Program-made: the position numbers and the translations under genes | The notes under the pieces: generated by a model | What the model was told of the DNA's origin: nothing | The model's input: only the letters and a program-made list of their open reading frames with translations | The model's database searches: none | Part shown: positions 33,760 through 36,425 of the stretch, piece after piece | Position numbering within the stretch: position 1 is the stretch's first letter | Layout of the letters: every line of letters begins with the position of its first letter | Sequence record: AP017925.1 | Length of the DNA: 64,000 nt | Direction: 5' to 3' (one strand)

Positions 33760-35721
33760 TTAAGGCTCTCCAGTAATGAAGAGGCTGAGGAACACGCGGT
33801 AATCTATAATTTCGATACCGAGCAAGTTGGCTTTGCGGGCATTGCTGCCAGGGCGTTCACCGACCACAACGTAATCGGTTTTAGCACTGACACTACCGGA
33901 CACGAGACCACCAGCTGCCAATACCTTGTTTTCCATGGTATCCCGCGATTCCGGGAACTTACCAGTGAAGACAAAAGTCTTGCCAGCCACACCTTCGATG
34001 GTTTGGATCTCTCCCATTTCAGGAATATGCAGTCGTGCATGGAGATCCATTGCATCCTGCTTCTTCTGCGGGTTCGAGAAGTAGGCAGCGATGTTAGCGG
34101 CCGTACTTGGTCCGACATCTGGTACTTTCAATTCGAGCACCTTGTCTGGCGTGTCGAGTTCGAAGAGTGCCTGGTGCTTAAGAATCCGCTGAGCGAGCTT
34201 TCGCGCAGTTGACTTCCCAACCTCTAGGATGCCCAAGGACATGATGAAGCGATCCATAGTGGTGTCTCGCGAATTCCAGATGGCTCGGTGCAGCTTGGCA
34301 GCCGAATACTCGGTATAACCCTCCAGTTTGGCGATTTCTGCGACTTCTAGCTTATAGAGGTCAGCTGCACATTTCACGATCCCGGCTTTGAGCATGAGAT
34401 CGATCGTCTGCTCAGCCAAACCATCTACGTCCAGTACATCACGCGACACGGCATACGCAATGCTAGCCACTGCCTGTGCTTCGCAGTGCGGGTTCTCGCA
34501 GTAGTAAGCTGCACCGCGCTTCACGATCGGAGTCTGGCAACACGGGCAGTTGGTCGGGAACACTACGGGCCGGGCATCCGGCACAGCCTTGATGAGTTTG
34601 CCAAAGTGAGGAATTACGTCACCCGAGCGATACACCTCGTAGCTATTACCAATCGCGATCTGACGCTCGCGCATGCGGTCTTCGTTGTGCAGTGATACCG
34701 ATGTTACCACCACCCCCATAAGCGGCGTCGCTGTGATCTTCGCAACCGGCGCAATTTCACCAGTACGACCCACCTGGAACACCACATCAACAACCGTACA
34801 TTCACCTTTCGTCGGCGGGAACTTATAGGCGAAGGCCCAACGCGGAGAATGAGACGTTTCACCCAACTCAGCCTGCTTGGCGGTATCATTAATCTTGAAG
34901 ACCATTCCGTCAATGTCAAACGGAATGTCTCCTCGCTCACGGATTTCCGTAATCGAGTCGAATACCTCCTGAATAGAGATGGGCGAAAGGAGGAAACAGC
35001 TAAGCATCGAGAACCCAAGATTCTTGAGCGTTTCGAGCTTGTCGGTGTACGCATTGAAGACAAAGTCAGCTCCTTCGATATCGTAAGGAACAAACGAGAT
35101 GCCGTGCGTAAAGTTGTTGGGCTGGTCGCGGTTGAGCATACCAGCTACCGCATTGCGGCAGTTGGCGTACTTATCCGGACCTGTGTTCATGAACTCCAGC
35201 CAGGCCTTCTTGATCAGCGCTTCCCCACGAACTTCCACCATACCCTTGGCGTCAATTCTATCACGCACAAACTGCGCGGCGTGTTTGGTTACGTCCTCGC
35301 CGTACTCGCCGTCGCCACGTGTCAGTGCACGGGAGAAGATGCCATCGATGTACAGCAGAGATAGCGCCATGCCGTCGTACTTGAATTCGCCGACGACCTT
35401 TACTTCTGGATCGAACTTCGTTGACCAAAGGTTGATCCAACTTTGCAGCTCGTCCTCGTCGAGCGCATTCTCCAGAGAGAGCATCGGGAATTCGTGACGC
35501 AGATGCTCGTTCTTGTTGCTGGCCTTGATAGCACCCACCTTGAACGTCGGAGAGAGTTCCAGCGTTTTGTCCGGATGCTTGGTTTCCCACGCGATCAGTT
35601 CCTTGCGAAGCTTATCGTATTCGTGGTCGGGAATGAGTTCAGTGCCGTCGATGTGGTAAGCACGATGGTATTCCGCCATCTTGCTCGCGAGACTGACGTA
35701 AGACAAGTAATCGTTTATCAT
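33760..35721 (-). CDS. ligA: NAD-dependent DNA ligase
   Basis: YDKL, [46 protein letters not shown], Zn finger CPCC...C-x4-C, HhH region and BRCT (GKTFVFTG). Confidence 0.97.
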   Translation of the reverse strand: [653 protein letters not shown]

Positions 35722-36425
35722 GGTTTTATAGGCTCGTCAAATATGAAATGTGTCTCTGGAAAAGCATTCTCGCTGTCAGGATGTTCGTCGGTCAGAACGA
35801 ATCCATGAGCCGGGATAGCGTAATCCTTTTCCTCTCTAATCATCGTTTTTATCCATTCTTCAGCGAACTCGTCATTTACGAGCATCAGATCGTACGTTGG
35901 TGTGAGTTTTTCATCAACGAAGTCATAGGCACGATCATGGTTTACATATTTGCCATCAACGTACAATCGATTAATGCGGCAAGCGATCGGATGACCGTCA
36001 ACCGTAGTCTCTTTGGCACGTAGTGCTTTGCGGATGAGCTTTGGCACCTCTTGCGCTTTAAAACTAGGATTGAGTACCCTAGGGTCGTATTTCACCGACA
36101 GCAGCGCATGAAGCGTTATATCGCCTTTATGCGATGACTCCTCAGGGAACAATAGCAACGCGACTTCATCGTTGATCCGCTCACCCTCGACTCCGGAGCC
36201 TTTCAGAATCAGTGATTGAAATTTACCATCTTTGTAATTGACGCTGGCCTCTAGGCCGTAGTTGTCGTAAGAAAGTCGGAACTCGCGCGACGGATGCGTC
36301 GCAAGGCACTCCATTACTTTCGCCGTAATATTTTTTCGTGCTATCCGTACACTGCGATGTTTCGGGAATTCCACGGGATGCATTACAATCGATCTTGTCG
36401 AAGGCGTCTTCTTGGGTTTATCCAT
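35718..36425 (-). CDS. degenerate NAD-ligase adenylation-domain paralogue (~235 aa)
   Basis: [33 protein letters not shown] aligns with LigA [33 protein letters not shown], and [10 protein letters not shown] with [10 protein letters not shown]. ATGA overlap with ligA. Confidence 0.6.
   Translation of the reverse strand: [235 protein letters not shown]

Follow-up and report, generated by a model that had tools for sequence, protein, structure and literature searches.

LigA, the NAD+ (nicotinamide adenine dinucleotide)-dependent DNA ligase, is an antibacterial drug target and is regarded as a self-sufficient monomer. In Escherichia coli a second LigA-family gene is found in the same genome, encoding LigB, an NAD+-dependent ligase paralogue with a reduced domain set that includes OB and HhH; its catalytic motifs are preserved and it works as a ligase. 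In unrelated fold families, pseudoenzymes of the so-called prozyme type, dead homologues co-expressed with an active relative, have been demonstrated to form heterodimers and to activate (the trypanosomatid S-adenosylmethionine decarboxylase (AdoMetDC) prozyme; METTL14 with METTL3). In the heterodimeric ligase of the T5-like phage PR1 (PDB 9hu3/9i5i; phrog_3359 and phrog_3498), ligase function is spread over two adjacent genes, and models of phrog_3359 and phrog_3498 cover the N- and C-terminal halves of LigA. Finally, poxvirus A20/OPG148, a viral replisome subunit and processivity factor, descends from a bacterial NAD-dependent DNA ligase and has been inactivated; it is a protein that covers the adenylation (nucleotidyltransferase, NTase) domain, the OB domain and extra terminal binding regions, and that has the polymerase and the uracil-DNA glycosylase (UDG) as partners (bioRxiv 10.1101/2022.11.22.517515). 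Here we describe ORF162, a gene lying directly upstream of ligA (ORF161) in a 64,000-nt stretch of sequence record AP017925.1 (the window, to whose positions all coordinates refer unless stated otherwise). ORF162 almost certainly encodes a free-standing copy of the LigA NTase domain that is unable to adenylate itself and is co-made with a complete LigA through an ATGA overlap of the two genes.

The segment 33760-36560 is 100% identical to the Ralstonia phages RP31 and RP12, members of Ripduovirus and phiKZ-related jumbo phages of ~280 kb. In the RP12 annotation the same coding sequence (35718-36425) is a 'hypothetical protein', present as a single copy in the genome. The papers on RP12 and on the FLC phages leave the gene unannotated and do not discuss it, and our literature search found no paper describing a protein of this type and none on a heterodimeric phage ligase, an NAD-ligase pseudoenzyme or PR1.

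The homology of ORF162 to LigA needs profiles or structures to be seen, since the single sequence gives nothing significant: pairwise BLASTP against the phage LigA returns E 0.10, on the very segment that had been aligned by hand in an earlier sequence-only reading of this DNA, and Pfam gives no match at E≤1. The protein matches phrog_36354 (function unknown) at E 1e-169 over residues 1-235 of 235, and the NAD-ligase family phrog_3359 only weakly (E 0.038). Its family is rare. A word-indexed search gave 5 proteins and an exhaustive one 14 representatives among 1.84 billion clusters; these make up the 14-sequence alignment and profile A2, in which ORF162 is P0001. One of the 14, P0017, proved to be a false positive, a tetratricopeptide (TPR)-repeat protein. 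Wider locus scans yielded one locus in IMG/VR (L017), and a scan of JGI metagenomes with the family alignment A1 gave no confirmed relative.

With this profile the relationship becomes apparent. In PDB, the 16 best matches of A2 are all NAD-ligases, at the motif I region (best E 7.5e-4). PF01653 is matched by 11 of the 14 members (best E 6.3e-5) and the NCBIfam LigA family by 10, in every case below the cut-off (27 bits, the gathering threshold, for PF01653), and there are weak matches within the family to NF005987, the NCBIfam LigB family. Plain hidden Markov model searches see a single stretch, residues 53-85. In contrast to these local matches, an hhalign comparison of A2 with the N-terminal part of 120 LigAs (97% probability, E 1.9e-10, 229 columns) pairs residues 1-235 of ORF162 with residues 59-305 of LigA, which is the NTase domain, beginning at HxxPMLSL and ending with the motif V strand. 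The three hand alignments of the sequence-only reading are reproduced residue for residue by this profile-profile alignment, with G57 opposite G117, K75 opposite R135, H106 opposite R165 and G208 opposite G272 in addition to the pairs D54/K114 and Y56/D116 discussed below. That reading had called ORF162 a paralogue; the homology to the LigA NTase domain holds, while a duplication of the phage's own ligA is not what the profile scores single out, the family profile scoring bacterial and phage LigAs alike (15-34 bits).

Predicted structures lead to the same domain. A template-free AlphaFold2 model of ORF162 (predicted local distance difference test, pLDDT, 75) was compared with PDB by Foldseek, and the top 34 matches were all NAD-ligase adenylation domains (E ~1e-9; template-modelling (TM) score 0.6-0.68 by query); VIA-align gives the same domains at Z 16.5, with a root-mean-square deviation (rmsd) of 3.0 Å over 200 residues. 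P0018, the most divergent member of the family (20% identical to ORF162), was modelled in the same template-free way (pLDDT 81) and again finds NAD-ligase adenylation domains first (Z 18.6, rmsd 3.0 Å, 207 residues). The likeness to adenylation domains such as those of PDB 2owo, 3jsl and 1tae thus covers the whole-protein fold (Z 16.5-18.6, rmsd ~3 Å, 200-210 residues). ATP-dependent ligases rank lower against both models (Z 12-14), the NTase-bearing subunit of the PR1 ligase is similar to the family models at Z 14.9-15.1, and an independent BFVD model of ORF162 and an ESM Atlas model give the same NAD-ligase NTase result. No poxvirus replisome entry is among the 50 matches listed in the PDB fold searches, and the likeness to A20 is one in kind. 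From the profile alignments and models taken together, ORF162 is identified as a homologue of the LigA adenylation domain that consists of that domain alone; the resemblance claimed in the sequence-only reading is borne out by hhalign, Foldseek and VIA-align alike, and phrog_36354, formerly of 'unknown function', gains an identity as a ligase-derived pseudoenzyme. Among the viral BFVD matches, the ranks 2 and 7, after RP12's own entry, are taken by two short 'putative DNA ligase' proteins of 308-332 aa from phiKZ-like Pseudomonas phages, B3FJJ2 (201phi2-1) and A0A1Y0STZ1 (Phabio).

What the protein has lost is precisely what makes the domain an enzyme. With the hhalign alignment as a guide, we located the counterparts of the LigA residues in all 14 family members. 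The lysine of KxDG that is adenylated in LigA, K114 of motif I, aligns with D54, as the sequence-only reading had seen, and its column reads D, L, V, D, N, A, D, D, S, D, K, D, L, V across the members, the single Lys belonging to P0011. D116 of the same motif is Y56 in ORF162; the Gly-Glu pair of motif III is deleted in the family; D271 and K276 of motif IV have become H207 and T212, in columns that are variable across the family; and K300 of motif V is D230. The conserved arginines R189 and R261, which we take to correspond to the E. coli DNA-contact residues R200 and R277, are not kept either. The earlier statement that the RG motifs are lost applies to motif III, whose Arg is H106, but not to TRGDG, whose Arg is kept conservatively as Lys (K75). 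The domains that surround the NTase domain in a full NAD-ligase are missing as well. Domain Ia is absent, the alignment starting at LigA residue 59-69 and the structural matches at about residue 65 of the ligases; at its other end the motif V strand is the last element, and the protein stops at the point at which LigA would pass into OB. As had been proposed, it has no OB, Zn, HhH or BRCT domain: these give no Pfam matches and lie outside the aligned span.

In fact, the part that remains is architectural. H16, G57, Y64, G67, K75 (for R135), G76, G78, G81 and E82 are retained, comprising the HxxP start and the glycine scaffold of motif I and TRGDG..GE, together with the Gly of motif IV; these residues form the framework of the cleft-building strands. 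Within the cleft, by contrast, Y56, R83, T104, H106, D213 and H226, together with a C-terminal motif, are conserved in the family yet unlike LigA. Judged by its residues, ORF162 is not a functional NAD+-dependent DNA ligase (EC 6.5.1.2), each of the defining catalytic features tested being absent, and we strongly infer that it is catalytically dead and cannot self-adenylate. Covalent nucleotidyltransferases require the motif I Lys plus residues of motifs III, IV and V. It is very improbable that ORF162 is still a nucleotidyltransferase, acting through a non-canonical nucleophile or non-covalently: P0011 has its Lys at the motif I position and K75 and E82 are conserved, but the residues of motifs I, III, IV and V are all lost together, and the motif I position varies freely between D, L, V, N, A, S and K.

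The remodelled cleft could also be read as a binding site for a small ligand (NAD+, AMP (adenosine monophosphate), NMN (nicotinamide mononucleotide), ADP-ribose or a defence signal), which the protein would buffer or report to LigA. The eight residues lining it (Y56, K75, E82, R83, T104, H106, D213 and H226) are indeed conserved in the family and different from LigA. All the AMP-contacting residues of LigA, the counterparts of E113, K115, E173, K290 and K314 in E. coli, are however lost or variable in the family, which weakens the idea of a NAD or AMP sensor, the NMN-binding Ia domain is absent, and the conserved positions lie on core strands, where they may be structural only. Such a sensor or sponge is thus improbable, even though the phage invests in NAD+ supply: RP12 has an ORF of the NAPRTase/NAMPT family (PF04095, E 1.6e-31, 613-aa frame) at 199385-200419 of its genome, on the minus strand and outside the window, which points to phage NAD+ salvage beside an NAD+-dependent ligase. 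This agrees with jumbo phages that bring their own NAD+ supply and often carry NAD-ligases (PMC11662467).

The ligase next door has none of these defects. ORF161 matches PF01653 at 4.8e-52 and phrog_3869 at 1.9e-222; the OB, HhH and BRCT domains are also matched by Pfam, Ia and Zn weakly. None of the residues found invariant among 39 aligned LigAs is missing from it, K114, R135, E167, D271, K276, K300 and the four Zn cysteines being among them, so that on its sequence LigA is complete, with all catalytic motifs intact. The two genes are interlocked: the ligA ATG is read at 35721-35719 and the ORF162 TGA at 35720-35718, the plus strand showing TCAT at 35718-35721, and the overlap of stop and start reported from the letters alone is real. 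No AGGAGG-like Shine-Dalgarno sequence is found in the 20 nt 5' of the ligA ATG, only GAG, and this fits coupling of ligA to ORF162 by termination and reinitiation. Translational coupling, the other half of the earlier claim, is likewise supported by the ATGA overlap onto an intact ligA.

To place this arrangement in a wider context, we collected the DNA around the gene in 10 lineages (RP12/RP31, FLC4-3B/FLC1-1B, the P0003 contigs, the P0002 contigs, L010, L013/L014, L015/L016, L017, L018 and L020); the P0042 contig, known by gene calls alone, is probably one more. In all 10 the gene is an intact ORF, and in all 10 it stands directly upstream of a confirmed or called NAD-ligase gene. The 4-bp overlap with ligA recurs in five lineages (RP12, the P0003 type (L003-L006), L010, L017 and L018), and in four others the genes are separated by spacers of 3 nt (L013), 4 nt (L007), 12 nt (L015) and 17 nt (L020). 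FLC4-3B is the only lineage in which pseudo-NTase gene and ligA are uncoupled, a 120-aa ORF on the opposite strand (gp170, L001:4705-5067, minus) lying between them. Pairwise identity of the pseudo-domain runs from 21 to 59%, in parallel with 32-85% for the NTase region of LigA, and the position upstream of ligA is kept even at 20-26% identity.

The gene is under purifying selection and is not decaying. Synonymous divergence (dS) is saturated in all pairs for which DNA is available (proportion of synonymous differences, pS, at least 0.72), which makes formal ratios of nonsynonymous to synonymous divergence (dN/dS, omega) unreliable and leaves one rough omega of ~0.12, for the closest pair; the proportion of nonsynonymous differences (pN) is 0.25-0.46, against a pS of 0.72-0.87. 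That catalytic residues are lost, and that the gene is absent in some relatives, would suit a ligase gene, once duplicated or split, of which a functionless piece is left to decay. This explanation is scarcely credible: with an intact ORF in every lineage, free of frameshifts and stops, and pN far below pS, ORF162 is not a pseudogene, and in addition the family is recognisable down to 20% identity with its fold preserved, has motifs of its own, and conserves both position and coupling.

What, then, might such a protein do? The sequence-only reading had proposed a pseudo-enzyme partner, with scaffold, NAD/AMP sensor or decoy as candidate roles. ORF162 would be made from the same message as LigA, in step with it through the ATGA overlap, and would act by binding, without catalysis. 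We envision a subunit that assists the phage LigA, or the replication and repair machinery served by LigA, as an accessory or adaptor, using the retained NTase scaffold and the remodelled cleft (Y56, K75, E82, R83, T104, H106, D213, H226). We put forward this non-catalytic role tentatively, as a reading with a little less than an even chance of being right. Prozymes offer the working model, by analogy, in that an active enzyme and its dead homologue are expressed together; they differ in that heterodimers and activation have been shown for those pairs, while ORF162 is known from sequence and models. LigB differs in the opposite way, being active with its motifs, OB and HhH kept. The PR1 ligase provides the likeness of two neighbouring genes, and ORF162 could be taken for its subunit A, a candidate that we rejected: ORF162 has neither the catalytic residues nor Ia nor OB, and the LigA beside it is complete. 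In T5 and PR1 the NTase-bearing subunit is part of a working ligase (according to the entry titles), whereas in RP12 a single chain holds the whole of LigA, and the additional NTase domain is a dead one.

A20/OPG148 is a direct parallel in kind. It too belongs to a large dsDNA virus and has a fold derived from NAD-ligase, a disrupted catalytic site and a diverged sequence kept under selection; its non-enzymatic role in replication is established, and by analogy ORF162 may have one. The differences are that ORF162 is an NTase domain only, that it sits beside an active LigA and is coupled to it, and that it is found in phages. The precedent of A20, and the location of the gene within a conserved block of replication-era genes, would also suit a scaffold that bridges other replication proteins (polymerase, clamp, nuclease) without touching LigA, its adjacency to ligA being a matter of descent only. 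We regard this as rather unlikely, given that coupling or a spacer of ≤17 nt in 9 of the 10 lineages suggests expression matched to LigA, and that A20 brings NTase, OB and terminal binding regions where ORF162 brings the NTase domain.

Several observations weigh against a role as partner of LigA. LigA is known as a monomeric enzyme. No fusion of ORF162 with ligA (the 'Rosetta stone' test) occurs among 120 LigA relatives, each of which has one match only to the family profile. In three LigA lineages, L011, L019 and L012, the gene upstream of ligA is not of the ORF162 family; their LigAs are 66-68%, 57% and 36% identical, respectively, to that of RP12, and two of the three belong to the same clade of jumbo phages. 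In L011 the gene preceding ligA encodes 194 aa; it was considered as a diverged member of the family and rejected (hhalign probability 0.4%). Three LigA lineages that lack the gene indicate that it is dispensable and that LigA does not need it, and the scatter of such lineages among carriers on the LigA tree indicates several losses or gains. Lastly, dN of the ORF162 family is 2.5-4 times that of LigA, which also fits a protein engaged in an arms race. We take ORF162 to be helpful and not indispensable, some related phages having lost it.

The fast nonsynonymous evolution and the patchy loss within the LigA clade are also what would be expected of a ligase mimic, a dead NTase domain that binds a host factor normally recognising a ligase NTase domain (a defence protein that senses or attacks the phage ligase, or a partner of host LigA) and thereby shields the phage LigA or diverts host repair. 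The acidic character of the family (isoelectric point, pI, 4.7-6.2) and the way in which overall shape is kept while catalytic and DNA-contact residues are lost go in the same direction. Anti-defence genes are usually located in variable regions. The strict position upstream of ligA over 20-26% identity would be unusual for such a gene, and no PADLOC defence family is matched, so that we consider the mimic unlikely, if less so than the scaffold; this strict synteny leads us to favour a role linked to the ligase or to replication over a free-standing anti-defence decoy. More specific versions can be imagined, in which ORF162 either forms a complex that tunes LigA (by adenylation gating, clamp closure or recruitment) or serves as a look-alike that absorbs a host attack on the ligase; that one of these two holds is possible, at perhaps one chance in three. 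If the tuning complex proved true, a dedicated pseudoenzyme subunit of the prozyme type would be described for an NAD+-dependent DNA ligase for the first time, and if either did, poxvirus A20 would be joined by ORF162 as a second case, independent of the first, of a virus exapting an NAD-ligase. More generally, a conserved, co-translated dead copy of a LigA domain suggests a layer of ligase regulation or protection that has gone unrecognised in jumbo phages of the nucleus-forming type, and the parallel with a poxvirus replisome subunit hints that NAD-ligases have been exapted recurrently in large DNA viruses. The ORF162/LigA pair is small, cloneable and directly testable.

The features of the locus are collected in the table below.

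Table 1. Genes, motif equivalents and signals around ORF162 (positions in the window).
Feature	Position	Strand	Remarks
ORF162, stand-alone NTase-domain protein, predicted disabled	35718..36425	minus	235 aa, phrog_36354; no internal stops
ligA (ORF161), NAD+-dependent DNA ligase	33760..35721	minus	653 aa; RP12 annotation and domain matches
ATGA overlap of ORF162 and ligA	35718..35721	minus	plus strand TCAT read directly
Motif I and TRGDG..GEDVT equivalent	36171..36269 (residues 53-85)	minus	K114->D54, D116->Y56, R135->K75; glycines and E82 kept
Motif III (EVRGE) equivalent	36099..36125 (residues 101-109)	minus	Gly-Glu deleted; Arg->H106
Motif IV (DGxVxK) equivalent	35787..35819 (residues 203-213)	minus	G208 kept; Asp->H207, Lys->T212
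Motif V strand, family-specific C-terminal motif	35733..35765 (residues 221-231)	minus	motif V Lys->D230
Shine-Dalgarno-like AGAGGAAAG	36434..36442	minus	9-17 nt upstream of ORF162 ATG
ORF163	36518..36793	minus	91 aa, no family; upstream gene of probable transcription unit
ORF164	36846..37364	minus	172 aa, signal-peptide-like N-terminus, internal repeats; probable first gene of unit
Terminator-like hairpin, strong	37397..37418	minus	9 pairs (8 GC); between ORF165 and ORF164

The ATG at 36425 is supported as the start of ORF162 by the Shine-Dalgarno-like AGAGGAAAG, by the RP12 annotation and by the N-termini of the homologues. A longer frame starting with GTG (to 36554) was considered and has no backing from either the homologue N-termini or the RP12 annotation. 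From ORF165 to ORF158 all genes are on the minus strand, and the neighbours of ORF162 and ligA have no family assignment. The strong hairpin is the nearest one lying upstream of ORF164, and from there to the end of ligA no comparable terminator-like hairpin is seen; for this reason ORF164, ORF163, ORF162 and ligA plausibly form one transcript. A scan for sigma-70 promoters gave no more sites than shuffled sequences, with a model that may not apply to a phiKZ-related phage.

Some further observations concern the LigA relatives. A subset of the jumbo-phage clade (P0033, P0037, P0039-P0041, P0044, P0045, P0047, P0049-P0051) has LigAs of 797-857 aa (e.g. L010:4001-6490), with an extra 140-200 aa after BRCT. 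These long proteins were considered as ORF162-ligA fusions and rejected, the extension being C-terminal and no pseudo-domain being present at the N-terminus. An AAA-family ATPase gene lies directly 3' of ligA in L010 (6546-7613) and L012 (5992-7068), overlapping the end of ligA in L012; RP12 does not have it at that position.

Upstream, ORF164 contains three to four imperfect 20-residue repeats of the pattern H-I/V-E-A/P-P-A-R...I-Q-R-F-G, seen by TRF as a 60-nt period at 37132-37244; the protein has no Pfam or PADLOC family. A 712-aa frame on the plus strand, 37266-39404, runs antisense to ORF165; in coding DNA rich in GC it is probably no more than a spurious shadow ORF. ORF165 itself (37434-39263, minus, 609 aa) is conserved and adjoins an SLT (soluble lytic transglycosylase) gene in relatives.

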